A stretch of DNA of 64,000 nt from Macrostomum lignano (Eukaryota). The notes below the pieces were generated by a model. The model searched no databases and had not been told where the DNA came from. It saw nothing but the letters and a program-made list of their open reading frames with translations. Positions within the stretch are counted from its first letter, which is position 1, and the number at the start of each line of letters is the position of its first letter. Shown here one piece after another: positions 15,754 through 63,381 of the stretch. Both the position numbers and the translations under genes were made by a program. Location of the stretch: contig NIVC01000700.1 of assembly GCA_002269645.1 (NCBI GenBank), positions 62,001-126,000 on the forward strand. Direction: 5' to 3'.

Positions 15754-16107
<354 letters not shown>

Positions 16108-28400: not shown

Positions 28401-31400
28401 AATTGAGATGAAGGGAGTTGGATTGAGATGAAAGGAGTTGAATTGAGATGAAGGGAGTTGAATTGAGATGAAGGGAGTTGAATTGAGATGAAGGGAGTTG
28501 GATTGAGATGAAAGGAGTTGAATTGAGATGAAAGGAGTTGAATTGAGATGAAAGGAGTTGAATTGAGATGAAAGGAGTTGAATTGAGATGAAAGGAGTTG
28601 AATTGAGATGAAAGGAGTTGAATTGAGATGAAGGAGGTTGTATCGAGATGAAGGGATTTGTATAAAAGATGAAGGGAGTTGCACTGAGATGAAGGGAATT
28701 TACCAATACGAGCTAGTAAAAATACCCAGCCATTTTTCCGCTCGGAACAATGCAACACAGGCACACAAAATTAAAAAACAGGGGCTAACTTTGAACGTTA
28801 AACTGTGATACAGACACATACAAGCAGCATTCCCTCTTGGCTGTTTGCGCAGACACGCGTATAAGATTTGTTTATACGAACTTGTGTCTGAAATCTGGAA
28901 CTAGTGCTATTGAAGATATAGGAATGTTACATAGTCATTTCAACGGACGAGGGGGGCACTAAAGACCATTTTTTCAAATGATTTTCTCACACTTACGTCT
29001 GACAAGAGAAGGCCAGGCACATTATTGGCAATGCATAGAATAGTCCGCTGGGCCTGAACCAGTTGTAAGGCGCTTCGTATGGGTTCTTGAGTGCCGGATT
29101 CAGCAGCTCAGAGATCTTCTGCTGCAGAGTCAGTCCGATCAGCTGTTGTAACGGAAGTGTTGCGTAGAATTAATAATTATCGTTTAGGACAGCAGGCCAA
29201 TCAGAACCTTTTGGGAGGGAGGGGCAGCAGGCCAATCAGAACCTTTTGGGAGGGAGGGGCAGCAGGCCAATCAGAGCCTTAGGGAAGAGGGAGGGACAGC
29301 AGGCCAATCAGAGCCTTAGGGAAGAGGGAGGGACAGCAGGCCAATCAGAGCCTTAGAGAAGAGGGAGGGACAGCAGGCCAATCAGAGCCTTAGAGAAAAG
29401 GGAGGGGCAGCAGGCCAATCAGAGCCTTAGAGAAGAGGGAGGGGCAGCAGGCCAATCAGAGCCTTAGGGGAGGGAGGCGCAGCAGGCCAATCAGAGCCCT
29501 GGAGGAGAGGGGAGGGGCAGCAGACCAATCAGAGCCATAGGGGAGGGAAGCGCAGCAGACCAACCAGAGCCTTAGGGGAGGGAGGGGCAGCAGACCAACC
29601 AGAGCCTTAGGGGAGGGAGGGGCAGCAGACCAACCAGAGCCTTGTGGAGGTTGGGGCACAGTTCAATTAGAGCCTGGAGCTGGAGAGTTAATCAAGTGTA
29701 TTTCAGTTACAGGCTCTCACATGCAGCAGGAAGCCAGCATAGCAGGAGAGAGACACGAAGCTGATCCGGGCCAGCGAGGCGGGATCTCGCATCAGCGAGA
29801 GCGGCAGGATGACGCCGGCGGCAAAAGCTGTCATGACGACGCCGCGAAGGTTGGGCAGGCTGGCGGGATCCGAGCCCAACAGGGCGGCGACCACCTGGAG
29901 ACGAATTTTTCGATGTCTTTTTTAAAGATGCGGGATAAATGTTGCCTGGCTAAATTAGCACTTGCGACCCCAGCTTACTTAGCAATCTACCATAGATGCC
30001 AACTTAGTGCAACAGAGGAAAGTAGTACAAAGTGCTAATTGGTACACAAGCACTCTTGAATTCAGTCCAGAGCCCTAACTTAGATAGTCTAGCTCTATGA
30101 CTCAATGCGCAGTTGGATGGTTGATCCTAATCCATTTGGTCTCCCTAACCAGTTACTAAAATGAATAAATTGCACCTACCTGCGGACAGAGATCGCCAAC
30201 AATAATTTGAAAAGCAACCAGAGTGCCAAGCGACAGGCCGATCATACTGAACTCTACTATCAGCTTGCCCATGGGTCCGTACAGGTAATGGGCGAGGAAT
30301 TCAAAGCTGTTTTGTTTAGTTGCCAGGGCGCAGGTGAGCAGCATGCGGCTGGACTTCAGTGTGGCCAAGCTGACCAGAATTAACAGCAGGCCGGCCAGTA
30401 GGAAGCCGCACTGGATAAGGAGGGGGTTGATTCGGCTAATTAAAAAATTAGAAAACTAATTATAACCAGCTGAGTATTGCTGAACAAAGCTAAGCCACTC
30501 GTACTATCCAGACCGGCTTCGCAAGTGTGTGCTTGCGGTTTCCTATATACTGCTCTCGTCATGCTTAGACTTTAATTTTCAAAATTCAAAACCAATCGAC
30601 TTTTTCTTAAGCCGTGTATGCCGCCGGTATCAGTTTGTCCACATACACAACACAGCGCATGCTGAAGACTTTGCGACTTAACCACCTCTGCCTAAGGGGG
30701 GCCGTAGCCCAGCGGTAGCGCAGCTGCTCTGGTGTGCCAGCGACCCAGGCTCGATTCCAAGTGCAGTCACATTAATTTGGGGCTGAATTGAAATCTCGGC
30801 TTGGCTCTGCTCGTGCAATTAACGGCCTTGAGAGCCAACCCCCCAAGGTGCAGTGAAGTGTACATGCCTAACGATAATATAAAGTTAGGGCCGCTGTACA
30901 CTCCTGTGTGAGTGTGTGCCTGCGTACGTATCCGCGCGCTTGTATGCCTGCTCAGGGGAGTCGGCGGAATGGGCAGTAATGCCTCTCACCGGTTGTGTGC
31001 CTATGTCGCTTAAAGTGCGCCAGGGTGCACACAACCCCCCTGCCTCTAAAAAAATAAATAAACTACCTCTGCCTATTAGCAACATATCCTGCTCAAGGCG
31101 ACATTCCAAAATGAGATGCGTGGCGTTGATTCGGTTTTGCTGAAAGTCTTTAAGTCACAATTAAACTGCATGAGCCTTGACCTTGGAAACTGCAGTTGTA
31201 CATCCTAGTGTTGTACATTACTTGCAGCGTATATAATAAGAAATATTGCGACTGCTTTGGTGATGAGTTCCCATCCGAAGCTACCGAACTTCGACGACGG
31301 CTATCTGGCGACTAGCGGAATTCAGGGCACAAAAACCGGTGCAGTCCGTCCCCCGCCGTTGTTCGCAGGATGTTAAATCGGTTCCTTGTAATCAGCCCAA

Positions 31401-31979: not shown

Positions 31980-32129
31980 CTGGCCGTCAACAGTTCACTG
32001 GCCTAACTAGAACTGTCAATCTGGTTGAGAGGCGCCTCTGGCTGGTGAATTTGGCTGAAAAAAGTTTTTGTCCAGGATTTTTTAGTCCTTATTTGCATTA
32101 GAGCGACCCAGAGAGCAGGACCGTAAGAG

Positions 32130-32420
32130 TGGACCCAAGAGTGACCGTCAGAGCGGACCCTAGAGTGACCGTGAGAGCGGACCCTAGAGTGACCGTGAGA
32201 GCGGACCCTAGAGTGACCGTGAGAGCGGACCCTAGAGTGACCGTGAGAGCGGACCCTAGAGTGACCGTGAGAGCGGACCCTAGAGTGAACGTGAGAGCGG
32301 ACCCTAGAGTGACCGTGAGAGCGGACCCTAGAGTGACCGTGAGAGCAGACCCTAGAGTGACCGTGAGAGCGGACCCTAGAGTGATCGTGAGAGCGGACCC
32401 TAGAGTGACTGTGAGAGTGG
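32130..32420. repeat. 24-bp tandem repeat (GTGACCGTGAGAGCGGACCCTAGA), about 12 copies
   Basis: Lies just upstream of the SLC38A10 start exon. Confidence 0.95.
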
Positions 32421-33720
32421 ACCCTATAGAGGGAGGGGGCGAGCATAAAGGGAAAGGGCTAACTGCAGAGGAGTGGGTGGCAGAAGGAGAAATGGGCCAT
32501 GCAACTAGAACTGATAGATAAAAACTTTAATTCACGAATGAAAAAGACTGTTCCGCTAGAAAGAGAACTGCAAAAAATGAATGCAGGCAAAAATGATGAC
32601 AGGCTTCAATGCGCAACGGATTATAATATATCCATAGCTTTGTAATTAGTAATCAACAGAAACAAAATTGGAAATTCGATCCGATCATAAAAGTGTTACT
32701 TATAATAATAATTATTATCAATTAGTTGCACTCAGCCCCGAGCGAAGGGTTATATTGATAAAAGTTGTGAAATTAAGTATACAGATCTCTTTGCACGGGT
32801 GTACGCTATTAATTATACAAACAATAATTTCTGTACAATATAACGCGATATGCACATACTCCCTATAGTTTTATAGCTATAATCGCGTTGAGACAGGGAG
32901 AAGGAGGAAAAAACACACAATGTTGCTTTTGAGTCACTTTCAGCTAGACCGGCGATCGGCATTTGTTAGTGCGCGGCAGTCTAGCAGTGCTTTTAGGAGC
33001 AACAGACACAGACAGAGCGCAAATTTAGCAGAGACAGATAGAGGGGAGAAAGAGAAATTAGGGGCCACAGAAGAAGTTTAGCTGGATGCGGGAAACACAG
33101 TGTTAGCGCATCATTGTGCAGCTGGCTCCGAGATGACAGAATATCAATGGAATCAGCAGCAGAAGGCAAAGTAAGCAAAGCAAATGGCATGGCAACTAAT
33201 AATTTTATTTTTGGAACAAAGAAGAAAACATGACATATTCGCAGACGACAAACAGATTTACTGGCCTGTCGGGGGTCTTTGTGCATTTAAGTGACAGTGA
33301 AACAAATCGGCATATTATTTAATAAAGCAAGGCAGGCAGACACAAATCGATAAGCGGGCAGGCTGTGGTGCTGTGCTGCACACACAGGGAGACTGAATAT
33401 TTACTGCCTGTTAAAAAAGAAACGATTAAGAATTGCATTGTGCAGCACTTCCGCTTGGCGACAAGCGCGCAGAAAAAAAACATTAAAACGACAAAGCAGG
33501 TAGAAAAACACAAAGAAACCTGTCCACTATCAGATACAGGGGACACACAATTGATCGAGTTAAAAAAATTCTTTAGCAGAAAGAAGAAAAACAAAAAGAA
33601 ACAAATTAATCAGACAAACTGGTGCAGGTAAATACGATGAGAAATTGAATAGGGGCTGCGGAGCGCAGGATAAATAACAGTAACTAAAAACATAATACTT
33701 GAATAAACTGGATTGGAGAA

Positions 33721-36700
33721 TCAGGACTTCGCCTCGGCCGCTGCCGCCTCTTCCAGGTCGATCTGCAGGTCGCCCGGGCTCGACGCTTCAGAGCCGCCGC
33801 CGCTGTTTTTCGCCGACGGCGCGGTCTCCCCCGTGCTGTTGGGCTTCGGCGGCGCTGACGACGCCGCGGAGGCAGCACCAGCCGAGATGCCGTTCGAGCC
33901 GTCGACCGCGGCCGCAGCGGCTGAGTTCGAATTCGCCGACGCATTGGACTGGCCGCTAGCGGGCGAATCGGAGGCGGCGGCCGCTGCAGCGGCCAAATGC
34001 CGCTTTTTCAATGGGACAGCGGCGCCCGAAGCCGGCTGCGACGACTCCGAGCAAGACGGCGTCGATTGCTGCTGCTGCTGCTGCTGCTTTAGTGGCGGCG
34101 TTTCTTCAGCGCGGCTAGCCACCTGCTGCTGCTGTTGGTGCCGCTGCTGCTGCTGCTGCTTCTGTAACTGAAAATCGTCGCTGATAATTTTGTCGATGTG
34201 ATCGCCGAATGTTAGAACTGAAGCACCTGCAATTGAAGCAGCCGTTGCGGCTGCGACAGTTGCTGGCGAGGACACAGATGGCGCCGAGGAGGAAGTGACA
34301 GCGGCTGACGGAGCGGAAGCGGCCGTCGGGAGCTGGGAACTGGCGGACAAGTGATGCACCGCCTGCTGCTGGTGAGGATTATGATGATGGTGGTGGTGGT
34401 GGTGATGATGATGCGGATGCTGCGGCTGCTTCTGCTGCTGCGGATGAGGATTCTGGTGCTGTGATTGAGAATGGTGCTGTTGATGATGCTGATACTTGGC
34501 CTGCTTTGCCTGATGCTGCTGCTGCTGCTGTTGTTGAGGATGCGGCCGCTTAGCAGCCTGCTGAGACTCTTTGTGCGGATTCAAATTGGTGCTGATCTGA
34601 TTCTGAATAATCACGTCAATCAGAGTGGCTGCTGTCATCATATTCTCCGAGCTAGAGCTGGTCACCAGGCCGATTGACGATTCACTGGCTGCGGTGGTAG
34701 CGTTGGCCCCATGATGAAAACGCCTGGGCTGAGGCTGAGGCTGGTGCTGCTGGCGCTGTTGTTGTTGTTGCTGCTGCTGCTGCTGCATCTGCTGTTGCAG
34801 AAGCATTGTCTGCTGCTGCGGAAACGGATGCGGGTGAAGATGCTGAGAGTGCGGCGGAACCTGCGGAGGTGGAGGAGGCGGCGGCGGAAGCAGCTGTTGC
34901 GGCGGCTCCTTAGCGGCAGGCGGAGCCATAGGCGGCGGCATGCGCTGCTCATTGGCCATACGCTGCCTTCTGTTAGCCAGTACGTGATAGAGCTGGCTGG
35001 CTTCGGAGCTGGTCCTGGTGCGCTCGGCGTCGCTCATAGCCCGACCTCGGAAGGTGAACGGCTCGACCTCTTCGCGATATTTCTGCTCAGCCTGAGCTGC
35101 GAAATAATCAGACTGAGACATTAGCTGCGGTGGCGGCGGCGGGGGCGGGGGCGGCGGCAGCGACTGTGGCACCATCTCGTACATCATTGACTGGTGCTGG
35201 GAGGAAGAAGGGTGCATCGGATGCTGCTGCCTCTGCTGCTGCTGATGATGATGATGCTGGGATGGTGACACAGGCATCCCACCGTGTGGCGGCGCACCGG
35301 GACCACCAAGTCTCTGAGCGGCGAGAAAGTTTTCCTGGATAATTGCGCGTGTGTTGGCAGCTTGATCGCTGCCGCCGCCGCCCCCGCTGGCTGGTGAGAA
35401 CGGAGGGGGCGGAGGCGGGTGCGGAGGAGGCGCCGTCTTAACCAGCGGCGGGGGTGGCTGCTGCTGCTGCTTTTGTCGGTGCCGCATCATGTCTGCGGCT
35501 GCGGCGGCTTGTTGTTGCGCTGCCGAGGCTGAGTAATCGAATCGATTCATTGGCATTTTTGGAGAAGATGACGAGTTTCGTACAACGGAGGCTGGCTGCG
35601 ACGGTTGCTGTACTGGATAAGGCCTGGACACAATCAGGCTGGCTGGCAGCTGCTGCGAGGCTGGAGGCGGCGGTCCCGAAACTGTTGTGAGATTCTTCTC
35701 TATTGTTATATTAATCAAATCTTTGATTGACTTCTGCGGCGACTCCTCGGCGACTGACGCGCCCATTGACGCGGCCGGCATCGGGGACAACGCCGTCAAC
35801 CGGCCGCCGAGACTGCTGTTGCCACCAGGCGAGGAGGAAGCGGCGGCTGCGGCGGCAGCGGATGGCGGATTGAGAGTCGCTGTTGGAGCCAGCGGACTGG
35901 AGGACTGGCGGCTGGCGCTGGGCGGCCGCAGCGGCGACCGATGCGGCGGGGTCGAATGCGGCGTCTGTTTTGCTTGCTGCTGAGGCTGCTGCTGCTGCTG
36001 CTGCTGCTGCTGTGGCGGCGGCGGCGGCAGGGGAGGCGTAGACGAAGGTGGCGACTCCTGCTGGCTGGACTGCGGTGGGACTGACGGCTCCGAATTGGTC
36101 CCGTCGGCATTCGAAACGGCGACAGTGGGATTTGCCGCGGAGGCGGGAGCAGCAGCCGCGGGGGCGGCCGAGGATGCACCGCCTCCAGTTCGGTTGGCTT
36201 CGATGACTTTCCGCCGGCGAATATTGTGCTTCTTATACAGCTGCTTGTAGGCTTCCTTCTTCTTGGTCAGATAGTAGAACTGCACGCAATCCGGCACGGA
36301 TTTGTTCTCCAGAAAGGCGGCAATCGCTCCGAAATTTTTTCCATACAACAGGAACTTTTCCTTGAACGTGGCCCTCTCGTGCGGCAGCCATCTGAATGAC
36401 AGGTCCTGATCGGCGTTCCACAGTTGCACGGGATCGCCTCGAACTAGTCCGTTGCTATTAGCAACCAAGCGACGCCGTTCCCATGGCGGCAACAGCATAG
36501 GCGGCAGCACGGCTAAACTCTTCATCCGCTCTTCCTCTTCACGGGCATTCTTAATCGTGTCAACCATCTCGTTGACTTCGGCCTCGCTTCGGGCGGCCGG
36601 CTGGGCGTAGAAGCGTTCCATTCGCTCCTTCTCTTCGCGACTTTTGCGCACCTCGGGAAGTATTTCTCAAAATAGTCGCGCGATTTAGCGTCGCGCTGTT

Positions 36701-39264
36701 TGCGCTTAGCGCTATTGCCTAGCCGCTCTAGCCGGCGGGTCCACTGCCGCTGCAGCTGGTCGTAGTTCTCCCGCAGGTGCCGCTCCCTGTGCGCGTTGGC
36801 CAGCACCAGCCGGCGAATGTGGTGAATTAGTCGGGGCTTGAACTCCTGGTGGCGCAGCTCCTGATCGCGAATCGCCGGCACGTCGGACGGTTGATTGTAG
36901 AGCGGCAGCACTCGGAAGAAACTGTCCGGGCCGCCACGGTCTGGCCGATCTAGCAGGCCGCGGCCGGCAGTCTCGGCAATCTGACGATGACTGTCGCGAG
37001 CTTTGCGACGATTGTCGGCCAGCACGGCGGCGAAGGGGTTCACCAGGCGCTGGGCCAGCTCTTCCTCTTCGCGACGGCGGCCTTCCTCGGTTTCGCCTTG
37101 GCGCGCCTTTAACTGCAGCTTCTCCAGCTCGGAAGTCTTGGCTGCCAGCTGATCAACTGTGCTTTTTATCTCCGATTCGATGTTGATCAGCTTCTGTCCG
37201 ACATCGTTCTTTTCTTTTTGCAGCTTTTGCTCGTTGCGGGCGTCCTCGGGAGCGGGGCTGATTGCCTCCACCTGCGATAGTGCGATTGTGGGTAGTGCAA
37301 TTGAAAATTATTCTCTGAACTCATCACTAGCGTCCGCTGGAAACCATAGCGAAGACGCTTGGCTTGCTTCTAAATATTTGAGTTCATTTTGAAAATTTTT
37401 TAGAACCATCTTTAGAATTCCTCAGCAACAACCATTTTCGTTTTCTTTTAAAAGCGTTTTGAAAATTCCGTTTTTAAACACCTTGAAGAAACCAGCTCAA
37501 TGATTCCACAGAAACCATCTCAATGATTCCACAGAAACCATCTCAATGATTCCACAGAAACCATCTCAATGATTCCACAGAAACCATCTCAATGATTCCA
37601 CAGAAACCATCTCAATGATTCCACAGAAACCATCTCAATGATCCCACAGAAACCATCTCAATGATTCCACAGAAACCATCTCAATGATTCCACAGAAACC
37701 ATCTCAATGATTCCACAGAAACCATCTCAATGATTCCACAGAAACCATCTCAATGATCCCACAGAAACCATCTCAATGATTCCACAGAAACCATCTCAAT
37801 GATTCCACAGAAACCATCTCAATGATTCCACAGAAACCATCTCAATAATTCTGCAGAAACCATCTCAATGATTCCACAGAAACCATCTCAATGATTCCAC
37901 AGAAACCATCTCAATGATTCCACAGAAACCATCTCAATGATCCCACAGAAACCATCTCAATGATCCCACAGAAACCATCTCAATGATTCCACAGAAACCA
38001 TCTCAATGATTCCACAGAAACCATCTCAATGATTCCACAGAAACCATCTCAATAATTCTGCAGAAACGATCTCAATGATCCCACAGAAACCATCTCAATG
38101 ATCCCACAGAAACCATCTCAATGATTCCACAGAAACCATCTCAATGATTCCACAGAAACCATCTCAATGATTCCACAGAAACCATCTCAATGATTCCACA
38201 GAAACCATCTCAATGATTCCACAGAAACCATCTCAATGATTCCACAGAAACCATCTCAATGATTCCACAGAAACCATCTCAATGATTCCACAGAAACCAT
38301 CTCAATGATTCCACAGAAACCATCTCAATGATTCCACAGAAACCATCTCAATGATTCCACAGAAACCATCTCAATGATTCCACAGAAACCATCTCAATGA
38401 TTCCACAGAAACCATCTCAATGATTCCACAGAAACCATCTCAATGATTCCACAGAAACCATCTCAATGATTCCACAGAAACCATCTCAATGATTCCACAG
38501 AAACCATCTCAATGATTCCACAGAAACCATCTCAATGATTCCACAGAAACCATCCCAATGATCCCACAGAAACCATCTCAATGATTCCACAGAAACCATC
38601 TCAATGATTCCACAGAAACCATTTCAATGATTCCACAGAAACCATCTCAATGATTCCACAGAAACCATTTCAATGATTCTGCAGAAACCAAATCTTAGAT
38701 TTAGCAGACACTTCTAATATTTTTATTGATATAGGCTGAGGATATACGCACCTGAGGATGATACAGCTCGCCCTTCTGCCTGCCCGCCCCAGGCGGATCG
38801 TGTCGCTGTTGAATGAGCTGAATACGCGGCTTGTCAGACTGCCGCCTGTCCATGGCGTACCGATAGGGGTCGGGGACCCGGTCCTTCTTGGGCGTGTCGG
38901 GCGTTATCATAGTGGTGGCGTAGCCGGGCACAGTTCCGCTTGTTGATGAAGCGGCAGCCGCGCCCATCGCAGCCGGATGATGGTGGTGATGATGCTGCTG
39001 CTGAGCAGGCGGACCTTTCACATGCAGTGTTGAAGGTCTAGCTCCAGATGGTAGTGGCTGCGACGGAGGCGGCGGCGGAGGATGATGCTGCTGTTGAGGC
39101 GGCGGCGGCGGATGATGATGATGCGCTGCAGATGCGGACACCCCGTGTAAAGCGGCGACAGCGCCCGCAGTGGTGACAACGGGTGGAGCGGCACCGCCGG
39201 CAGCGCCAGCCGCTTCTGGATGATGCTGCGAATGGTGCATCACCTTGCTGTTCTCAGTGCCCAT
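33721..39264 (-). CDS. NCOR: Nuclear receptor co-repressor NCoR/SMRT homolog (about 1354 aa after correcting a 1-nt frameshift at about 36655)
   Basis: Exons 39264-38752 and 37271-33721. Motifs YHPQ|VEAISP, LPLYNQPSD, the SANT/DAD region WLPHERATFKEKFLLYGKNFGAIAAFLENKSVPDCVQFYYLTKK, and CoRNR-like TAATLIDVIIQNQI and FGDHIDKIISDDF. The exon sum (4064 nt) is one base short of in-frame. Confidence 0.88.
37492..38690. repeat. 23-bp minisatellite (CCATCTCAATGATTCCACAGAAA), about 50 copies, intronic
   Basis: Fills the NCoR intron. Confidence 0.97.
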
Positions 39265-40101
39265 GGCTATAAATATGCTGCGCTATTGCTGCTTGCTGCC
39301 GCTGCTTGATTGGCCAATGGGTCTGGCGGGAAAAGCGACAAGCTGAAATTGGTGAATAGAAATTCAACAATAATATTTACAAACAGTTCTTGCCAACCAG
39401 CTATCATTATAAAGTTGTATATCGTTATTTCATTATAAATAATATATTTAGAGCATGAAAATACAACATTTAGTATAGCACATATAATAGGTAAAGCAAT
39501 ACAATATATAAATACATTGTAGGACTACTATGTATGCATAGTGTACTTTGCACTTTGGGACAAAATCTTAATATCCCTATTGTACAACTATACAGTTTCT
39601 ACAAATATTTGGCTATGTCCGATAGGCCCAGACCTTTTAGCTAGCTAAAAGTCTACCCTATTTATTTATATTGTTATTTATGCCTTCATATATGAGCTAT
39701 AAGCCCATAATCCATAACGCTCTTGACTTTTCAAACTCTAACTTTTTAGTCTTTTATTCCTTCTAAGCCTTTTCTCAAATTGTAACATATTTTGCCCAAG
39801 TGTTACATCTCTAATACCTATAGATAGGATGATTCCTATGAAGAAGATAGAATTAAATAAGTAATAATTTTTTGTTCGACTATATAATTAAAAGTTTAAA
39901 AATGAATTTTAACAACTATATTAATATTGTTGAATAAAAACATACCTACAGTCAATAAATACCAAATATACAATTAGTTTGCATATTCATATAATAAATA
40001 TATAATAGATGGTCATATAAATTAGATTTTTTAACGAAATGGTTAAAATTAAGTGATTACTTACTATTTATTCAAGGCTTATATGATTTCTATAAAGTAA
40101 G

Positions 40102-40385
40102 CATACATGCGCAACCTCCAAAATTCGGTCGGCCATGCGACTTAGTTTTAACAAAAATGCGACGTAGTTTTTGGCCAAAAATGTGACTTACATGTAATAA
40201 AAACTGTAAAGCAAAATTAACGCAACTTTGGGTAAACGGCAGGAGTAACTATGACTGTCTTATTAGGGCAAAATGCCTCGTAAGACTACTTAGGTTTTTT
40301 GGGTGGGCATTTTTGCGACTTCCTTGATTGGCTGCCAAATCGGTCGGCCGGATCGGCCGACTCGGCCGACTGTTGCGCATGTATG
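40102..40385. mobile_element. 284-bp non-autonomous DNA transposon (14-bp TIR, 8-bp TSD) carrying a 28S rDNA-like segment
   Basis: TIR CATACATGCGCAAC / GTTGCGCATGTATG. TSD AAAGTAAG at 40094-40101 and 40386-40393. The 28S-like tract is at 40230-40281. Confidence 0.93.
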
Positions 40386-43300
40386 AAAGTAAGTAAAGAG
40401 AATTTAGGGAGGGAAATTAAAGATAAGACAACAAGTGGAATATCTTGAGGAAAGAAAGGGGTGCTTGAGCAGTTTCAAGCACTTTGTGCTCAGATTTGAG
40501 GCTTTAGGAAAGTGGAACATCAACAACTAAGTGGCATTTGGTCTAGGTCTATTTGATTAAACAAGAAAGAAAGATTTGCAAGCCTATTAATTCAGGGCTG
40601 CTAAAACAAATATAGCTGATATTAAATACAATATGCTCACAACAAGGAATATAGCAAGATATTTTTAAAAGTTTAAACGTTACAGTTAATGGCTCCACTA
40701 AAGAACTCACATATATGGCAATTAGTCTATATTTATAATTGCTTTGATAACAATTTATTTTGAATAAATTTATTTAACTATTAATTAGCACTACTGCCAA
40801 ATGACTGATAAGTAGTGAAATAAGAATATTACTGACTGAGGATTCAAGTCATTAGGCAAGATTAGGATTAGGAATAGTTCCTTTTTGGATTTAGGATTGG
40901 GATTAGAATTTGGGAATTGGGATCAAGTCTTTTATTTTTTCGTATACTTAGTTTATAGGTTGATATAGATAGTTTATAGGCTATTATTATAGGTAGTTTA
41001 TAGATAGTTTATAGAGTTGAACAAAGTTGAACAAACTTTATCAAGATCAATAGGTAAAATATAACAGAATAGATACAAAGTTTTGTAACTGATGAAGTAA
41101 CAATATAACAAGTATATGTTAAAACAAAATATAGTTAAATAATTATTAATTCTATATTTTGAATTAAAAACATATTTCTAATTTTGATTTTTAGAATGAG
41201 CTGCACCTAAAACTTGCTGTGTAATTTGCATTTTGTTCTATGTAGCCTATAAGAGTTTACATTCCCATGCGCATGTTCTTTAATGTTTCAAATAAAAAGG
41301 AGAGACAGTGGAGGCACTTGCTTTACTTTTCTCTCGCCTGCATCTGCAGGCCCAAAGGCATGGCCATTGCCTTGGCTGGGCTGTAGACCATAGCAGCCTG
41401 GGCCTAGAAAAACCATGCTTTGAGTTCAATTCTTTGTTATCCAATGTTGAGCAGAAGGTGCAGTCAGGATACAAAATCCTACCTGTTACATTTAGAGATA
41501 AGATCCTAATCCCATAGGAATGCAATTTTCTTTGGGATCCTAAGACTAGTATTTGGATCAAGATCCCATTTTGACCTCTACTTATTATTATACTTGTCAA
41601 ACTATAGCTAAGGTTAATGTTTTTGCTTTTAATACTAAAAAAGTCTAAAAAAGTCTGGTTTTAAAGATTCAAGCAAAAAAGCAATATATACACTGTGGCA
41701 AAATATAGTTAGACATTAGGAGATAGCAAGTCAATTTGCCAAAAGTTGATTTGCTAAAAGCAAGTTCTTTTACCAAAAAATATCTATCTTGCAATGATTT
41801 ATACTATATATATACATTTGCATATTTCATTGAAATTATCTTTTAATATAGTTTTGTCTATCTGTAGTCACAAATGGCCATTGTTACATATTAAAATTAT
41901 TTTTCCTTATATGCAAAAAAGCAACATTAACAAAAAGAAGTGATCTGAAATTGATAATGCAATTTAAAGAGTTTTTGAAAAGCAAAGCAATTAATTGAAT
42001 TGAAAAGAATTGCATAAATTAGGATTTTAATATACTGCTTAATACTCTATACAAGGGCCATCCCAAAATTTTAAGCAATTATGTTCTGTAGTTTGGACTA
42101 ATATCACAATAAGATGATTTTTTACAGGGATTTATAATATGATGCAATGCATATAATGGTTTGTTCCTAGCACTTTGGCAACTTCTGAATGCTGTTTGTA
42201 GTACCCAAATCACCCCAGTGTTTTAGAAGTTGGCCAACCTTATTAAAGAGCTTATTTAGGCATTGATACTGGCAACCTCAAGTCCTTTATAAAAAAAATT
42301 GTTAGATGATAGATAAAGGAATTTCACTAAGTTTTGCCACTCTTAAACCAATTTTATTGCTTGCATATAGCATGTTGACATAGTGCATCCTTTTCATATA
42401 CACTATAAGTTGCTAATGGACTTGTATAGGGCCTAGCTAATATTCCTTGCAGCCATTCAGTTTTGATATAACATTGCTACTTGTTCTATGGGTCATATTT
42501 CCCCTTGCAATATTGGCCATGGCCAAGGAGGGAAAACAATAGTGACAAGAATTGCAATAGGCCCCTAGTAACAATATAAGAAAAATGCAAATATTTCAAA
42601 TATATAGGAAATTTTATAGGTATAGATTATTGCTAGCCACAGCCCACGGGGCCACTGTGATAATAATTGTAGCTAGGCCTATTAAAGTGATTGTGATTTC
42701 TATGGTAGAAATCAATCAATTGCAAAAACTTTTGAAATACCCTTTGTTCCATTGATACTAAATATTATTATTTGAATTGACTTTAAGATTTAGCTAAAAA
42801 AGGTTTTTAGCTAATTGAGTTTTAAAATTTAGTAAATCATAAATTGAATAAATCAACTTTTGCCAAAATGGTTTTGACACATACATGCGCAACTTCTGAA
42901 ATTACGCTGGCCGTGCGACTTAGTTTTCGATAAAAAATGCGACTTACCTATGAAAGAGCCAAGCAAAAACTTTAGGTAAACGGCAGGAGTAACTATGACC
43001 ATATTTTTAAAGCTAAATGCCTCGCCAGCTAATTAGTGCTGCGTGCAGATTTCGCGTTTTTATAACAGCTAATCAGTATGTCATCTAGTGGCGGCATGAA
43101 GCAATTAGTAAATTGTCAGTACAGTGTAGTGAGCATACTACAAAAGTCATGATTCATGAATGTCCAGAAGTAAGTGAAGTGAATACAGTGTGACCTATAG
43201 CTCAAGAACGATTTGCTAGACGATTTGGCATGGAAGATGAGAGCCCTGATTCAGATGGCTCATCAGATGCAGAATACGAATCCAGTAGAGATACAAGCTG

Positions 43301-43903
43301 TGAAAACCCACAGATTTTTAAACCACTGAATTCTAATTCCCGGAACTATTTTTGCATAGATTCTAAATTTGAAGTCATGCTCAAACAAAAACTTGTTAAC
43401 AGTTAGGAAAAAGGCAAAGATGGGAGTAATGCATGTTAAACTAAGATTTGAGGCCTTTGCAAATTCTCTCCATTCCTCAATCTTCTCATCCTCTTTTTCT
43501 TTTCTCTCTCATCCCTTATCCCTTCTCTCTTTCCTCTCCTCTCTCCTCTCTTTCCTCTCCTCTCCTATCTCTTCTGTCTCCTCTCTACATTCTTATCTCT
43601 CCTCTCGTCTCTCTCCATTCCACTCTACTCTCTCATCTTATCTTCCCTCTCGTCTCTCTCCACTCTACTCTCTCATCTTATCTCTCCTCTCTTCTCTACT
43701 CTCTCATCTCTCCTCTCTTCACTCTCCTCTCATCTCCTCTTTATCCTCTCTTCTCTCATCTACTCTCTCCTCTTTCCTCTTTTCTCTCTTCTGATCTCAT
43801 CCATCATCTTTTCTTTCCTCTTTCCTCTAATCTCCTCTTCTCTCTCATCTCTTTTTCCTCCCTCAGCTTTCCTCTCCTCTTCTATCTTTTCTCCCATCGC
43901 AAC

Positions 43904-44972
43904 CCCGTTGGAAAAGTTATGCACCTGCAGAGGCACAAAAGGTGAGCGAGGTGCACAAAAGAGGCACTTTGGTGGCCTATTTCGTGTGTGTTTTGGAAAT
44001 GCACCTGAGTGCACCTTTTATGCCTAAATGTCACCAATATTTTTGAAAAGAGGCATGAAAGGTGTAAAATCGGTGAAGTGGTCAGGCAGTAGGTGAATTC
44101 TCAATTTTGATTGGCTGCGGCGGTAGGGGCAGTAAAGGTGCTGAAGGGGCGCAGAAAGTGCACAAAAGGTGAATTAGAGGTGCATAAGGTGTACATGTTG
44201 CAGCGTAAATATGTATACAGGTGCATTTCCAAAACACGCTCGAAATAGACCCCAAAGTGCCTCTTCTGTGCACCTCGCTCACCTTTCATGCCTATGCACG
44301 AATTAACGCATTAATAATCAGTAACAAAAAATTAACTGAGAGTTACATACTCGTACATTGCACGCACAGATCGAACATAGAAAAGCTTTATTTACACCTA
44401 TACTAATTGCTGCTATCCCCTTCCTGATCCTGACTAACCACAAAAGTAAGCATTTCCTGTACTGATAAGTTTTAATAACTTTCAAATACTCAGGAAAAGT
44501 TCCGAAAAGTGATGAAAAGCTTTGAATCTGTTTAAAGAATAATAAGAAAAAGTAGCAAAGAACTTTCGCAAGTTGGAACGCCCCTTGCATTGCCTCTACA
44601 CCTAAAGTGCCCACTGTGCACCGTTTGTTCACCTTTTGTGCCTCCAATGCACACTGTACACTTTTTATGCACCTCCACCACAGCGCACCTTTTTCACCTT
44701 TCACTCCACCAATGCCCCCAATTCCTACTTTGTTCACCTTTTGTGCCTCCAATGCACACTGTGCACCTTTAATACACCAAACTCCCCTATGACACCTGTG
44801 CCCCTACCACCTATTTCGTGCCTTATATTCACCTTCTGACCCTGCAGAGGCACTCAAGTGAACACGCGGTGCACAAGTGGCACAAAATAGGCATAAAAGA
44901 GGCGAAAGTGAGGCAGACGGTGTAAAACTCTTCACCTTTCATGCCTACTTTAAAAACTCAAAATTCAACGGG
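43904..44972. mobile_element. Nested non-autonomous element, CACTA/CMC-like (CCCGTTG termini, 3-bp TSD AAC)
   Basis: CCCGTTG...CAACGGG flanked by AAC on both sides, interrupting a CT-rich tract. Contains many short GCACC/AAAGGTG/GAGGCA repeats and a roughly 70-bp internal inverted repeat (43937-44007 vs 44219-44287). Confidence 0.6.
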
Positions 44973-45239
44973 AACGCTCGCCTCTCCTCTGTTTGCTTAT
45001 CTCTAATCTTCTATTCCCTCTACTTTGAAGTAAGAAAATATGCACATATTTTTGCTGAAGATAAGAGGAGAGAAGAGGGCATTGAGGAGAAAGGGTAGAG
45101 AAAGGGGGAGAAGAGAGGAGAGTAAAAATGAGAGGAGAGAGAAGAGGGAAAAGGGGGGAGAGAGAGAAGAGGGGAGGCAAGGTAGAGAAGAAGAGAGAGA
45201 TGAGAGTTAAAGAGACACCAACCTTGCTAGTTAGGAAGT

Positions 45240-45305
45240 TTCAAAGAACCCGAGGGGCGAGGGCCAGATAGAGGGGCTTCGCGAGCCGGAGTTTGCCGAC
45301 CCCTG
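45240..45305. mobile_element. Orphan hAT (Charlie-like) terminus
   Basis: GGGCCAGATAGAGGGGCTTCGCGAGCCGGAGTTTGCCGACCCCTG followed by the 8-mer CTCCAGAG. No matching left end found. Confidence 0.45.
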
Positions 45306-45483
45306 CTCCAGAGTTTAAGAAATCAATGGGAAACTGTTGACGCGGGCTTCTGATTTCAAAGATCTTGTCTGTGGTTGAAGGCTTCTATTCTGTTTTTGCT
45401 CTCCTGCCACACTTGCACCTACTACCCCCTGATTGCCTCTGATTGTGACTTACTTCCCTCTTATTGCGACTTAGTTGCTTCTT

Positions 45484-46040
45484 TTTGCGACTTACCTAAT
45501 CCTTTTTGCGACTTACCTAATCCTTTTGCGACTTACCTAATCCTTTTTGCAACTTACCTAATCCTTTTGCGACTTACCTAATCCTTTTTGCGACTTACCT
45601 AATCCTTTTTGCGACTTACCTAATCCTTTTTGCGACTTACCTAATCCTTTTTGCAACTTACCTAATCCTTTTGCGACTTACCTAATCCTTTTTGCGACTT
45701 ACCTAATCCTTTTTGCGACTTACCTAATCCTTTTGCGACTTACCTAATCCTTTTTGCGACTTACCTAATCCTTTTTGCAACTTACTTAATCCTTTTTGCA
45801 ACTTACCTAACCCTTTTGCGACTTACCTAATCCTTTTTGCGACTTACCTAACCCTTTTGCGACTTACCTGATCCTTTTTGCGACTTACCTAATCCTTTTT
45901 GCGACTTACCTGATCCTTTTTGCGACTTACCTGATCCTTTTTTCGACTTACCTGATCCTTTTTGCGACTTACCTGATCCTTTTTGCGACTTAGTTTGCTT
46001 CTTTTGCGACTTACCTAATCCTTTTTGCGACTTACCTGAT
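45484..46040. repeat. 20/21-bp minisatellite (GCGACTTACCTAATCCTTTTT) inside the transposon
   Basis: About 26 units. The core GCGACTTA also occurs singly in the element's subterminal regions. Confidence 0.95.
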
Positions 46041-48289
46041 TATTTTTACAACTTAGCTTGCTTCTTTTGCGAATTGTTTTTCTTTTGCTTCACCATTTTC
46101 CCTGAACTGCTCTTTCTTTCGCTTTCCTCTTGCCTTTCTTGGTTCTTGTGTTTTTCTGTTTTTGGTTGACTCAATTTTGCGACTTACCCCTGGTCAGCCA
46201 CGATTTACGGTGGCCGGATCGGCCAGGTCGGCCAGCAGTTGCGCATGTATGTTTTGACAAATCATCTAATATTCAAGTTAGGGGCCTAAGGCAATAAAGG
46301 CTAGGCTATAATTAAAATGAATGTTATTCAATAACATTAGGGCCTATTCAATGCAAGGAAAACTCTTAAAGTCCCTAGGTAAGGTTAATGACTCAAACAA
46401 TAGATTTCTATGCAATATGGCATATTCATATCATTATATAGTTAAAATAGCAAGTCTAGAGACTATAGTCAAAGTAAGTAGTAATCCTTTCCTAGTAACT
46501 TTTTATATAATTAAAATTAATTGGGCCTAAAATAACTTAATAAGTCATAAATGATAAGTTAGGCCCTAAACTATTGTTTTTTAACTTTTATTTAATGAAC
46601 TACTGGCCATAAGTATAGGATAGGCGGCATAGGCCTAGGCCTATTAATACTAATAATATAGTTGTTAGGCCTAAAAAGTAGGCTTAGGCCCATTGAAAGT
46701 TATGGGAAATATATAGACCAGCATTGCAAATGTCTAAAGCTTAGGCCTAATACTAAGCCTAACCCTAAGCCTATTAGGCCTAAGGTCTAAGGAGAGGATA
46801 AGGTATTTTGTTTTGACGAACCAGCTTCTTATTTATATACATAGAATACAGGCATATAAGCCTAGCATAGCATAGGACTATAAACTTGTAGTTGTAGGAC
46901 CTATATTATTAGTAGGCCCCCTATTAGACTCTTAGAGGGCCTAGAGTAGACTAGAGCCTATCTAAAATCATAAAATTAAGTGGTAAGCTTAAAAAGCGAG
47001 GCAGTACCTCAGAGCATCCAAATGCTTTGGCTCAGAACCTCAGGTGACGCTAATGCATAGAAAATAAAAGAAATAGGCCATACGCCCATAGTACCTAAAT
47101 GTATTAATATTATTATGAGTAGGGCCTAGCCTAACGTCATAAATTCTACAAAGCGTTAATCATGTCTACACATTTTTGTGCAGGCTTTAGAGGCACTAAA
47201 GGCGATTCCATTTCAAACAAATATTTTGTGAATGATTTTTTATTTTAACGATAAAATAAAGCTTACAACAAAATATAACTTTTTATAGTTTTTATTTTGC
47301 AGAGACTTTGAAGGCTTTATTTTTGTGCAACAAAATCTACGTGATAAAAATTCAATTTTTTTGCACTACTAGCAAGTTTATACTAGTAACATGGAAGAAT
47401 AGAGTGATTTTAAACTAGGAATATGGCTTCCATTTTCTATGCGGGAGTCTAGTTAAATTCGGAGTGACCTGCAGCCCTCACAAAGTCGTTTCTGACCCTT
47501 TTTTGGCCTTTTTAAAACATTTTATGTGGTTTTAGCTGACTCCCTAACCTGAATATTTAGGCATTGGTAGGCTAAGATAAAAACTGCTAAATCCTAGAAA
47601 TTAGCAGCTAGTCTAGCTAAGCAACTCAAACAATAGCAAATTTGTATGAGAATGAGGCTATGATAAGCTCCCTAGGTCTCCATGAAGCTTTTATTGGCTA
47701 ATTCCCCATGTTAAAATATTTTTCTTATTTATTTCCCCTTGGTTTTCTGACCTTATGCTTGTGAATCAAGCTTTAAAACTTACTGATATTAAGAGAAGTG
47801 AATATAATGCATGAACTGATTTTCAAAACAAAACAGTTTTATACTAGAATTTTTTGTAATATTTTAACATCTTAAAGTAGTATTAAAGTTTTTAATCATG
47901 GATTATTAAATTATTGTTTGCAAATGTTTTTTTATAATAAGCAATTATTGTAATATACTCCAAGAAATTTGAAAAGAAACTTTTGTTTAAAACTTTTTTG
48001 CTACAAATAGCTATTGCTATCAATATATATTTCTTTTAAATAATATATTTAGGTAGGCCTATAGATTGTATTTAATCAATCTAAGAACTCCTAGATTAGA
48101 TTGAGATTATTTCTTCTGAGAATCCATTCAATATAAACTCTATCCCATGGTTCAAATTAGTTTATGATCATATTAATTTTGGTCTTATAGCCAACAATTA
48201 CTTTTACCCAACCTAATTGAAGTGTTATTGTGCAATTCATACCCATGAAAGCAAACCCCAAAAATTTAATCAAGATCTTCAGATTGGAC

Positions 48290-49535: not shown

Positions 49536-51164
49536 CAATTCAAGAAAATTTTCAGGTTCTAGTCTGAGTTGAAGGTCTGATGCAAAATTGCTGAATTAGC
49601 TAATCAGTGACGGAGGTTTGATGCTCTCGCCACAAATAAGTGGAATTGTTGTCTGTACTTTGCACTCTGTAGTGCTTCTTCTGCCTTACCTTCTTGCTTA
49701 CCTTCTGCCTGTGTTTAATTCATAGGCTGTTTGCAAATAATCTTACAGAGTGCGTTAGAATTCCGCGTGTTGTCTCTGCGGCACTGGGGATGCAACACTA
49801 CCTCATTAATTAATGAGTGCCAATGCGGAAACAGCATCGCAAAGCTCAAGTTTGTAGCTTGGCTCAGCACTATTTTATGCATTCGAGCCGCAGGGTGAAA
49901 CTGTCTCGTAAATTACCATTAAGGCCGGATCTATGCTAGGAAAATCAATAGATGGAAAGAGGCTGAGGGAAATGATGATGAGTGCCTGGCAAAGTCGAGC
50001 TTAATTATATGCAGGTGAGCGGCGAATAGGGCTAATGGGCTGTCTCGATTTCAACTGAGTTTGTGGTGTCTAATTAAATGTAACGCGAGAGCCTCCACGA
50101 AAAGCGGGGTTGGCTAGCGTTTATTTGACGCTTTGTTTACAGGTTTTCGCCCCACCACTCTCTCTCTCTGTCTGTGCTGGTGCTGGAGTCAAATTCTTGC
50201 CGGATGCGTATAGCTGAGAAATCGCGTTCTCGCCTATATAAAGCTTGGTTGGCTCGACAATTTCTAAGCAAGCCACAGCCTCCACTCTTCATCGTGTAGC
50301 GAGCTCTACAACTACTTGGACCATCGCGTCTACATTTGTTTTTTCGGCGAGTATTGCTTGGTCATCTTAGACTTTGTTTTATTCCTTTTTAGTCACTGTC
50401 CATTGCCTTCTGATTGTCCGTAGCAGCTCTCCCAGATTGCTCAAATGTGCTTGGAGAGTCTGTTGCTGGCATCCGATTGCTGGACTTTGCTCAACGAGGA
50501 CTGAAAATTCCCTGGAAGCTTTAAGTATCAGATTAAACATGCCTTTTGAGGGAGTTTTTTGTATAAATCACGAGGGCCTGAGGCCCGAGGGATTTATGAA
50601 AATAACTCCCGAAAAAGGCATGTGTAATCTCGTATAAACCATAGACATAAAGACTTTACGGGATATTATTGGATATTACCAAATAAAATCCCGGAGAACG
50701 CAAATATTGTCACGGAAAGTCTTTATTTCTATGGATTATCACTTAATATTTTATTTTAGTCGCTTGTTCTATAGCGAATTTTTTGTCTATGGTGTTTTTT
50801 ATTCAGATCATTCAGACTATCAGGTAAATCATCTTGAAGTGGAATATGAGCACAGATTCTGTGAGTATGAGGGATTCTAAGGTTGTTTGGGGCGATACTT
50901 TAAGATGTGACGACTAGCAAACTTTTAGCGAAACGACTAGCAATCTAGTGCCCCCTTCGGGGCACGCAATAAGCAAGGAGCAAACATTATTAATGAAAAA
51001 CAATTAAAAAAGCACATTTTCTTAAGAACCTTGAGTTGAGTACAATTGTCACGGACAAAGATGTTTACTATGAATATCTTTCCTTTTTTCTAAACTTAAC
51101 AGAAAGACAATAAAAAAAAGTTTTCACAAAGATAACAGACATTCCCCCTAAATAGAAAACATCT

Positions 51165-52900
51165 CCCTGATAGCAAGCATCCTCCCAGATAGCAAGCATC
51201 CACCCTGATAGCAAGCATCCACCCAGATAGCAAGCATCCACCCAGATAGCAAGCATCCTCCCAGATAGCAAGCATCCTCCCAGATAGCAAGCATCCATCC
51301 AGATAACAAGCATCCCCTAATACTCGTAGCAAGCATCCTCCCAGATAGCAAGCATCCATCCAGATAAGCATCCATCCAGATAACAAGCATCCCCCAGATA
51401 GCAAGCATCCTCCCAGATAGCAAGCATCCATCCAGATAAGCATCCATCCAGATAACAAGCATCCCCCAGATAGCAAGCATCCTCCCAGATAGCAAGCATC
51501 CTCCCAGATAGCAAGCATCCATCCAGATAACAAGCATCCCCTAATACTCGTAGCAAGCATCCACCCAGATAAGCATCCATCCAGATAACAAGCATCCCCC
51601 AGATAGCAAGCATCCTCCCAGATAGCAAGCATCCTCCCAGATAGCAAGCATCCATCCAGATAACAAGCATCCCCTAATACTCGTAGCAAGCATCCACCCA
51701 GATAGCAAGCATCCACCCAGATAGCAAGCATCCACCCAGATAGCAAGCATTCATTCAGATAGCAATCATCCTCCCAGATAGCAAGCATCCTCCCAGATAG
51801 CAAGCATCCATCCAGATAACAAGCATCCCCTAATACTCGTAGCAAGCATCCACCCAGATAGCAAGCATCCACCCAGATAGCAAGCATTCATTCAGATAGC
51901 AAGCATCCTCCCAGATAGCAAGCATCCACCCAGATAGCAAGTATTCATTCAGATAGCAAGCATCCTCCCAGATAGCAAGCATCCACCCAGATAGCAAGCA
52001 TTTATTCAGATAGCAAGCATCCTCCCAGATAGCAAGCATCCACCCAGATAGCAAGCATTCATTCAGATAGCAAGCATCCCCCAGATAGCAAGCATTCATT
52101 CAGATAGCAAGCATCCATCCAGATAGCAAGCATTCATTCAGATAGCAAGCATCCTCCCAGATAGCAAGCATCCACCCAGATAGCAAGCATTTATTCAGAT
52201 AGCAAGCATCCTCCCAGATAGCAAGCATCCACCCAGATAGCAAGCATTCATTCAGATAGCAAGCATCCCCCAGATAGCAAGCATTCATTCAGATAGCAAG
52301 CATCCATCCAGATAGCAAGCATTCATTCAGATAGCAAGCATCCTCCCAGATAGCAAGCATCCACCCAGATAGCAAGCATTCATTCAGATAGCAAGCATCC
52401 TCCCAGATAGCAAGCATCCACCCAGATAGCAAGCATTCATTCAGATAGCAAGCATCCCCCAGATAGCAAGCATTCATTCAGATAGCAAGCATTCATTCAG
52501 ATAGCAAGCATTCATTCAGATAGCAAGCATCCTCCCAGATAGCAAGCATCCACCCAGATAGCAAGCATTCATTCAGATAGCAAGCATCCTCCCAGATAGC
52601 AAGCATCCACCCAGATAGCAAGCATTCATTCAGATAGCAAGCATCCCCCAGATAGCAAGCATTCATTCAGATAGCAAGCATTCATTCAGATAGCAAGCAT
52701 CCTCCCAGATAGCAAGCATCCACCCAGATAGCAAGCATTCATTCAGATAGCAAGCATCCCCCAGATAGCAAGCATTCATTCAGATAGAAGCATCCACCCA
52801 GATAGAAGCGTCCACCCAGATAGAAGCATCCACCCAGATAGCAAGCATCTATCCAGATAGAAAGCATCCCTCCAGATAGCAAGCATGCCCCCAGATAGAA
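51165..52900. repeat. 19-bp variant minisatellite (CAGATAGCAAGCATCCTCC)
   Basis: Direct reading; variant-block structure. Confidence 0.95.
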
Positions 52901-62809: not shown

Positions 62810-63313
62810 CCCCCACTGAGACACCAACCCCTACTGAATCTCCAACCCTCACTGAAACACCAACCCAATGAAACACCAACCCCTACTGAATCACCAACCC
62901 CCACTGAAACACCAACCCAATGAAACACCAACCCCTACTGAATCACCAACCCCCACTGAAACACCAACCCAATGAAACACCAACCCCTACTGAATCACCA
63001 ACCCCCACTGAAACACCAACCCAATGAAACACCAACCCCTACTGAATCACCAACCCCCACTGAAACACCAACCCAATGAAACACCAACCCCTACTGAATC
63101 ACCAACCCCCACTGAAACACAAACCCCTACTGAAACACCAACCTCTACTGAAACACCAAACCCTACTGAAACACCAACCCCCACTGAGACACCAACCCCA
63201 CTGAGACACCAACCCCCACTGAAACACCAACCCCCACTGAGACACCAACCCCTACTGAAACACCAACCCCTACTGAAACACCAACCCCTACTGAAACACC
63301 AACCCCTACTGAG
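62810..63313. repeat. 18-bp / 52-bp higher-order tandem repeat (CTACTGAAACACCAACCC)
   Basis: Direct reading. Lies just downstream of the DEG/ENaC stop codon. Confidence 0.9.
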
Positions 63314-63381
63314 ACAGCAGCAAGACTTATTTCGAAAGAGCCCACAGTGGCTGATCTGGCTAACTGGCCCTCAGTACACTC

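Follow-up and report, generated by a model that had tools for sequence, protein, structure and literature searches.

A decayed piece of the 28S ribosomal RNA gene in the left end of a DNA transposon family from Macrostomum lignano

Why should a DNA transposon that sits outside the ribosomal DNA (rDNA) carry, close to one of its ends, a piece of the 28S ribosomal RNA (rRNA) gene spanning the R2 and I-PpoI target region? The question is raised by a 64,000-nt stretch of the genome of the flatworm Macrostomum lignano (assembly GCA_002269645.1, contig NIVC01000700.1, positions 62,001 to 126,000 of the forward strand; hereafter the window), in which an element of 284 bp (copy A, 40102-40385) and one of 3372 bp (copy B, 42880-46251) have the same ends and a 28S-like tract in common. 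We favour the reading that the tract is a captured 28S fragment, dead as a target, in which two blocks of sequence have been retained for a function of the left end, and give this reading as a whole a probability of roughly 0.55. Capture of host or rDNA sequence by mobile elements is a known phenomenon, and the family is not a new kind of system.

Two transposon copies with a 28S-derived tract

Copy A is bounded by perfect 14-bp terminal inverted repeats (TIRs), CATACATGCGCAAC on the left and GTTGCGCATGTATG on the right, which are exact reverse complements, and is flanked by a perfect 8-bp target-site duplication (TSD). Copy B lies 2.5 kb away in the same orientation and has the same TIRs and an 8-bp TSD of its own, TTTTGACA (Table 1). 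When the TIR was searched for in the 64-kb window with up to two mismatches, four matches were obtained (0.37 expected), all of which are the ends of these two elements. The elements have a G+C content of 43-45%, compared with 27-31% in the surrounding DNA, and both are inserted in AT-rich, non-rDNA sequence; neither a whole-window Rfam search nor BLASTN with true 28S contigs detected rDNA within the window. The preliminary description of copy A as a TIR element with a perfect 14-bp TIR and 8-bp TSD outside rDNA is thereby confirmed. TIRs with a TSD of fixed length, found in several copies with different flanks, are the marks of class II elements, and copies A and B are members of a cut-and-paste DNA transposon family in M. 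lignano that belong to diverged subfamilies. Since their TIRs and TSDs are perfect, both insertions are probably young; in that case, A and B would differ mostly because their source elements had diverged, and in the source elements sequence unneeded for movement would be free to drift.

The tract in copy A matches the eukaryotic 28S sequence at 44 of 52 positions without gaps (40230-40281), and both the sequence and the count that had been reported could be reproduced. The 28S sequence used for that comparison is correct, being identical to the Rfam LSU_rRNA_eukarya consensus and to the 84-bp R2 target duplex (bioRxiv 10.1101/2024.11.11.623112). When seven contigs with true 28S were aligned to the whole window by BLASTN, significant matches (E 1e-9 to 2e-13) were obtained at 40214/40230-40281 and at 42975-43038, with E-values down to 1e-12 for copy A and 2e-13 for copy B. 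These two tracts are the only strong 28S matches in the 64-kb window; the next-best match is an exact one of 20 nt (48096-48115, E 5e-4), obtained with one contig only (L036). In targeted searches with the Rfam model LSU_rRNA_eukarya, copy A scored 24.7 bits (E 1.4e-4, model positions 2211-2311) and copy B 26.9 bits (E 3.4e-5, model positions 2233-2313). Both fall short of the model's gathering score of 50, collinearity with 28S is limited to about 70-100 nt, and the tracts are short decayed 28S fragments, not rRNA genes.

Could the resemblance be due to chance, or to a stray rDNA pseudogene fragment outside any mobile element? The scores below gathering would fit such an explanation, as would the fact that neither the whole-window Rfam gathering search nor a 901-nt search at E<=10 reported the large-subunit (LSU) tract. 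The BLASTN E-values speak against it, as does the equal placement of the tract in two elements that agree in their perfect TIRs but have flanks and TSDs of their own, and we give this explanation next to no weight. To judge by these alignments, the left subterminal region almost certainly holds about 70-100 bp copied from 28S (LSU model about 2211-2313).

Both copies (2/2) have the tract on the left and in like orientation, about 100-130 bp into the element and separated from the TIR by family motifs. The 28S similarity of copy B runs 19 nt further (43025-43043) through CTAATTAGTG, with 15/19 matches to 28S +16..+34. In copy A it ends after 40281 and is followed by sequence resembling the right arm of copy B; copy A therefore looks, in sequence, as if it had arisen from a B-like element by internal deletion.

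Table 1. Coordinates of the features of copies A and B in the window.
Feature	Window positions	Strand	Basis or remark
Copy A left TSD AAAGTAAG	40094-40101	.	Identical 8-mer at 40386-40393
Copy A left TIR CATACATGCGCAAC	40102-40115	+	Perfect reverse complement of 40372-40385
Copy A left subterminal motifs: TGCGACTTA at 40136, TGCGACGTA at 40158, TGTGACTTA at 40182	40136-40190	+	Motif scan
Copy A 28S-derived tract	40214-40281 (core 40230-40281; weaker from 40214; Rfam aligns 40205-40294)	+	44/52, BLASTN, Rfam
Copy A 25-mer GGTAAACGGCAGGAGTAACTATGAC = 28S -35..-11, contains R2 RUM -34..-22	40231-40255	+	24/25 to 28S, 25/25 to copy B
Copy A decayed centre TGTCTTATTAGGGCA = 28S -10..+5, R2 RASIN and I-PpoI site	40256-40270	+	8/15 to 28S, 8/15 to copy B, length kept
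Copy A 10-mer AAATGCCTCG = 28S +6..+15	40271-40280	+	10/10 to 28S and copy B
Copy A right subterminal motif TGCGACTTC	40314-40322	+	Motif scan
Copy A right TIR GTTGCGCATGTATG	40372-40385	-	TIR scan
Copy A right TSD AAAGTAAG	40386-40393	.	Matches left TSD
Copy B left TSD TTTTGACA	42872-42879	.	Identical 8-mer at 46252-46259
Copy B left TIR CATACATGCGCAAC	42880-42893	+	TIR scan
Copy B left subterminal TGCGACTTA, twice, at 42914 and 42938	42914-42946	+	Motif scan
Copy B 28S-derived tract	42975-43043	+	25-mer 42975-42999, centre 43000-43014, 10-mer 43015-43024, extra 43025-43043
Copy B interior, CT-rich and GA-rich inverted low-complexity arms, hairpin unit 43926-44298	43044-45459	+	No recognisable coding capacity; inverted-repeat scan
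Copy B tandem array, 28.7 copies of 21-bp unit CTTTTTGCGACTTACCTAATC, holds subterminal motif	45460-46055	+	Tandem Repeats Finder, 90% matches, score 931
Copy B right subterminal TGCGACTTA	46178-46186	+	Motif scan
Copy B right TIR GTTGCGCATGTATG	46238-46251	-	TIR scan
Copy B right TSD TTTTGACA	46252-46259	.	Matches left TSD

Conservation and decay within the tract

We counted tract positions from the R2 nick, which falls between TTAAGG and TAGC. On this scale, the 25 nt at -35..-11 match 28S at 24/25 in either copy and are identical between A and B (25/25), and the 10 nt at +6..+15 are the same in A, B and 28S (10/10 in every comparison). The 15 nt between these blocks (-10..+5) match 28S at 8/15 in copy A and 6/15 in copy B, and agree with each other at 8/15, their length being unchanged in both copies. 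Outside the tract, the arms of A and B have 86% identity in a gapped alignment (159/185 columns). Against this yardstick, the blocks are more conserved (35/35 identical; P about 0.005, Fisher 0.018) and the centre is less so (Fisher 0.004). All seven A-B differences in the 50 nt fall inside one 15-nt stretch (P about 0.001, permutation), and 10 of the 11 sites changed from 28S lie inside this central stretch (P 2.5e-5).

Four derived states are common to A and B, namely -25 (G to A), -3, -2 and -1. After the subfamilies split, four further changes occurred in A and six in B, all of them in the centre and none in the 35 flanking nt. Because the copies share the position and orientation of the tract, the G-25 to A change and three central changes, we consider it highly probable that the sequence was captured once, before the split.

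Uptake during gap repair is the usual way in which non-autonomous DNA transposons acquire host DNA. We infer a similar origin here, namely a host 28S fragment taken up in excision-gap repair, by template switching or filler synthesis, and both the clear homology and the internal position of the tract support it. In the reading that we favour, the 25-mer and the 10-mer, exactly 15 bp apart, would since have been kept as the two parts of a left-end element that binds protein, while the spacer between them would have been free to vary; the family's own transposase might bind there, or else a DNA-binding protein of the host or of R2 type. Functional constraint on the two blocks, as a putative binding site, is in our estimation an even chance on the comparison of the two copies. 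The preliminary description had suggested, from the survival of the tract in the minimal derivative, that it is part of the left end required in cis, an idea with which this reading agrees. What stands of this is that the tract is a feature of the family, present in 2/2 copies; the remainder is suggestive only, with n=2.

Several points weigh against the favoured reading. With only two copies to compare, the tests of conservation are post hoc and of modest weight, and the arms that served as yardstick align only with many gaps. The tract occurs at one end only, there is no known protein that binds it, and the search for an autonomous element gave none. Taken alone, its survival in copy A, a derivative of 284 bp with about 180 bp of left end, is weak evidence, as any deletion derivative keeps about this much and a neutral passenger within it would also survive there. 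The G-25 to A change may be the state of the host 28S gene, and AT-biased decay could add to the changes in the centre, although the GC-richer blocks should suffer at least equally.

A role for the tract as structured RNA was dropped: the helix 69 stem has changes on its 3' strand in A as well as in B, so that the hairpin is not maintained, and no other Rfam family matches the tract regions searched. As a separate observation on position -25, most metagenome 28S genes with A at this position also have a change in the helix 69 partner, TCTTTTAAGG instead of TCTCTTAAGG, which is compensatory. Copies A and B carry A at -25 without the compensating helix 69 change.

If the fragment had no role at all, it would be 28S filler from gap repair, and the pattern would stem from the small sample, from uneven mutation or from a source with an already damaged centre. 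Capture of host fragments is common among non-autonomous DNA transposons, and the tract lies within the 100-200 bp that deletion derivatives usually retain. Three of the central changes were already present in the common ancestor, and just two copies are compared. The authors of a 2024 review on rDNA and transposable elements speculate that most rDNA-derived modules bring no benefit to the elements that carry them. What tells against a neutral passenger is that the changes after the split are confined to the 15 central nt (P 0.001), that the blocks are more conserved than arms which themselves bear putative transposase-binding motifs (P 0.005-0.02), and that the centre has no indel while the arms are full of them. 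On balance, we regard neutrality as the main rival of the favoured reading, a possible explanation though less likely than not.

The central stretch coincides with the sites at which rDNA-specific endonucleases act. For the silkworm element R2Bm, the anchor motif RUM extends over -34..-22 (consensus A(-31)WWWGCNNNA(-22), with G-27 essential), the cleavage motif RASIN is T(-6)TNANNT(+1), where cleavage is lost on changing T+1 to A and position -3 is sensitive, and the distance between the two motifs is critical (PMC10499050). Both copies read AACGGCAGGA at -31..-22, that is, RUM is intact and at its native distance to the cut site according to the silkworm map (not one for flatworm R2); their sole difference from 28S within the RUM consensus falls on an N position, and G-27 is kept. 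RASIN reads TTATTAG in copy A and TTTTTAA in copy B; each departs from the motif at -3 and +1, and the base found at +1 differs between the copies. The 15-bp I-PpoI site, CTCTCTTAAGGTAGC, is matched at 9/15 positions in copy A and 7/15 in copy B. Since the cut site is destroyed in both copies by the published motif requirements, the tract is very probably no longer a substrate for R2 or I-PpoI. Thus, the earlier claim that the element carries the R2/I-PpoI target region holds insofar as a 28S-derived stretch covers that region, and fails insofar as this stretch is not a usable target.

This division between a kept anchor and a lost cut site would also be expected if the tract mimicked a landing pad of R2. 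The blocks would then be bound by a protein of R2 type, such as the zinc-finger/Myb N-terminus of R2 itself or a transposase or host protein of the same specificity. The cut site would have been lost or selected away, since R2 would nick or invade copies whose site was live. In favour of such a mimic, the 25-mer contains the complete RUM of R2Bm at the native distance, with G-27 kept and the only difference on an N position, and RASIN is altered in both copies at exactly its two most sensitive positions, -3 and +1. In addition, A-clade R2 elements have zinc-finger and Myb domains that cover an extended stretch upstream (bioRxiv 10.1101/2024.11.11.623112). The motif map, on the other hand, comes from the silkworm and not from a flatworm R2, the transposon would draw no evident benefit, and n=2. 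Furthermore, the conserved block exceeds the RUM (-21..-11), and the +6..+15 stretch is dispensable for first-strand cleavage by R2Bm (PMC10499050). We consider both parts of this proposal, the binding and the removal of the cut site, unlikely. The idea that a selected, disarmed R2 landing pad recruits an rDNA-specific DNA-binding protein (the N-terminus of R2, or a transposase that has the same specificity or has borrowed it) to the element without cutting is marginally less so; if true, it would constitute a direct link between class II elements and R2 or rDNA, for example a decoy, a tether to the nucleolus or a DNA-binding module common to both.

A last explanation would make the tract a relic of life in rDNA, the family having once inhabited the 28S site or its vicinity, with TIR-like 28S sequence serving as an alternative end. 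We scanned four rDNA contigs (2.8-10.6 kb) for the TIR, and in three of them (L043, L008 and L022) the best match of the right TIR is GACGCGCATGAATG, with 11/14 positions at 28S +29..+42. This site directly adjoins the captured stretch in the same orientation, 63 nt 3' of the start of the 25-mer; in the fourth contig (L034) the TIR-like site matches at 10/14 and is tied with others. The neighbourhood of the two sequences supports such a history, as does Pokey, which shows that a DNA transposon can occupy this 28S site and carry rDNA-derived repeats. Simple capture of a cryptic end does not suit the geometry, since the tract is in sense orientation and, with motifs of the family before it, about 100-130 bp into the left end. 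No copy of the family was seen in rDNA, where none could be sought. Moreover, the pseudo-TIR stretch has decayed in copy B (43038-43051, about 7/14), and the shared core is just GCGCATG, a post hoc match with a chance of roughly 0.01-0.02. We therefore rate a past life in rDNA as very improbable; the TIR-like site in 28S may be due to chance or may be a clue to how the fragment was acquired, and we leave it unexplained.

Motifs, coding capacity and classification of the family

The 9-mer TGCGACTTA occurs exactly 28 times in the window (0.37 expected), with 27 of the 28 occurrences inside the two elements. At one mismatch or fewer, the elements hold 36 of the 40 matches in the window, and these are all on the + strand (36/36), meaning that the motifs are direct and have the same orientation at both ends of the element. 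On the left there are three in copy A and two in copy B, and on the right one in each, to which copy B adds those of the tandem array. Judging from other TIR elements, these motifs are probably the sites that the transposase would bind. The stray occurrence at 30672 was set aside as a chance match; it adjoins a tRNA-like stretch.

Both copies are non-autonomous, copy A being 284 bp long and copy B having neither an open reading frame (ORF) of transposase size nor a credible Pfam match nor a homologue. The longest ORF of copy B encodes 165 aa in low-complexity sequence. A Pfam search with ten stop-free pieces of copy B gave no credible match (two faint ones in a single piece, E 0.5-0.9, well short of the cut-offs). 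Likewise, a six-frame concatenate of 2345 residues, comprising the element ends, the array and the interior of copy B with the 28S tract masked, had no match at E<=10 among 5.8 billion proteins. The sole ORF-like piece, at 43194-43403, hit one protein among 1.84 billion representatives, a bacterial acidic-repeat surface protein, which we discarded as a composition artefact. No transposase-like ORF was found at 46.3-57 kb of the window.

Much of the extra length of copy B is probably explained by one or more nested insertions at 43465-45210. This segment has inverted low-complexity arms, CT-rich and GA-rich, at its borders. The arms of the hairpin-like unit listed in Table 1 are 47-50 nt long and 80-91% complementary, and direct 50-nt repeats are present at 44624/44729.

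Short TIRs and a TSD of 8 bp are compatible with either hAT or P. Elements of the hAT superfamily have TIRs of about 10-25 bp with the start consensus (C/T)A(A/G)NG, and P elements have a 7-8-bp TSD and TIRs beginning CA(T). The transposases of hAT elements are marked by a BED finger, an RNase H-like DDE core and an hATC dimerisation domain, those of P elements by a THAP domain. The TIRs of our family start with CATAC, which departs from the hAT consensus and agrees with P in the initial CAT, a weak and non-diagnostic likeness. The family is accordingly described only as hAT- or P-like.

Relatives, known systems and surroundings

We searched for relatives of the family in metagenome and viral contigs. 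The pattern of the TIR followed by 21 nt and GCGACTTAG had no match in either set, and the 25-mer had none in the viral contigs. It matched 42 metagenome loci and two loci labelled 'genome', 43 of these 44 being flanked by true rDNA with the same G-to-A variant, and the family TIR was present at none of the 44. The remaining locus, L031, is a 28S-like scrap in other sequence and was rejected as a family member. Its 28S-like piece of ~47 nt (GGGTAAACGGCAGGAG...CCAAAT; Ga0173479_10047994, reverse strand, about 160-115) is part of a non-rDNA contig and lies between GGCCGG-rich sequence and (GACC)n, with a second partial 28S-like start ~100 nt further on. It is thus another instance of this 28S stretch outside rDNA, unrelated to the family of copies A and B. 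In several other metagenome loci (L001, L003, L005/L038, L011, L013, L016, L025 and L026/L041), 28S sequence with the G-to-A variant gives way to unrelated sequence at, or only a few bases from, the R2/I-PpoI site. These interrupted loci probably hold R2-type insertions or group I introns of unidentified eukaryotes; a short duplication, TGACTCTCTTA, is found at the 28S junction of L026/L041.

In agreement with the preliminary description, we found no described family with this layout. Keyword searches of the literature returned no such element, and both the TIR and the A-variant 25-mer are absent from the literature searched (most subscription journals and Repbase were outside its scope). The table of the 2024 review lists Pokey/mPok (spacer repeats), short interspersed nuclear elements (SINEs) with a 5S promoter, the terminal-repeat retrotransposons in miniature (TRIMs) Cassandra and Ajax, and SINE28, and includes no DNA transposon with this 28S region.

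Among known systems, Pokey/mPok, a piggyBac element of Daphnia, is alike in being a DNA transposon with miniature inverted-repeat derivatives (MITEs) that is tied to the same part of 28S and contains internal rDNA-derived sequence, which in Pokey lies upstream of the transposase. Pokey, however, inserts in 28S at TTAA with TTAA duplications and carries intergenic-spacer repeats rather than 28S coding sequence, whereas copies A and B, with TSDs of 8 bp, are found outside rDNA and contain the 28S site region itself, its cut site decayed. Pack-MULE, Pack-CACTA and hAT captures are likewise non-autonomous TIR elements with a host gene fragment between their ends. Their fragments are usually protein-coding exons that vary by copy and are not conserved in blocks; in our family, by contrast, a single rRNA fragment in subterminal position is common to diverged subfamilies.

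The Cassandra and Ajax TRIMs, the 5S-derived SINEs and SINE28 also are non-autonomous and have a conserved rRNA-gene module, which is 28S in the case of SINE28. They differ in being retroelements, SINE28 being a human SINE, and in that the 5S module acts as an RNA polymerase III promoter; we know of no promoter role for the 28S stretch of copies A and B. With the R2 target site itself the tract shares homology, RUM and the native distance from RUM to the cut, and it differs in the broken RASIN (-3, +1) and in its location outside rDNA, inside a DNA transposon. KolobokP, a Kolobok element with an I-PpoI-like His-Me nuclease, is similar as a DNA transposon that borrows a component of rDNA group I introns or homing. 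Here the borrowed part is a nuclease gene and not the target, the element has long terminal direct repeats, and it is known from seven other animal phyla, not from flatworms, while copies A and B have no nuclease gene. As a relative it was rejected, and we treat it as a conceptual neighbour only.

The family would be the first reported DNA transposon family with the 28S stretch used by R2, by I-PpoI-type introns and by Pokey. What was kept (the R2 anchor, the downstream block and their spacing) and what was lost (the cut site) raises the question of whether a module for rDNA recognition has been put to new use in cis by the transposon or is mere cargo, for which M. lignano is a tractable model flatworm. 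If cargo only, the tract would be a small addition to the catalogue of host captures, and a caution that 28S-like matches outside rDNA can be transposon-borne.

Window positions 8964-31107 are 100% identical to locus L046, which comes from contig NIVC01000700.1. The window has a homeologous counterpart in contig NIVC01000511.1 (L045), which, compared up to the equivalent of window 31.6 kb, is about 97% identical and differs mainly in the lengths of minisatellite arrays. These arrays are dense in the window (1-2925, 5700-6350, 10100-10600, 15600-16200, 22600-24350, 25900-27500, 27900-28800, 29200-29700, 32000-32500, 51100-52100 and 63000-63500), and the first of them (1-2925) has 66% G+C and a GC skew of +0.74. 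The tRNA-like stretch at 30700-30770 (GCCGTAGCCCAGCGGTAGCGCAG ... GGCTCGATTCC), which neither ARAGORN nor Rfam called, may be the head of a tRNA-derived SINE. Long ORFs rich in poly-Q/H, among them a SANT domain, occupy the minus strand at 33721-39264; they look like exons of an NCoR-like co-repressor gene that ends about 840 bp from copy A, and a look-up of the ORFs at 33721-36651 and 38701-39264 returned no matching record. The window further contains a phosphatidylinositol synthase exon, 99% identical to an M. lignano protein, and, at 57.1-59.3 kb, a paramyosin-like gene with best matches in Schistosoma (54% identity).

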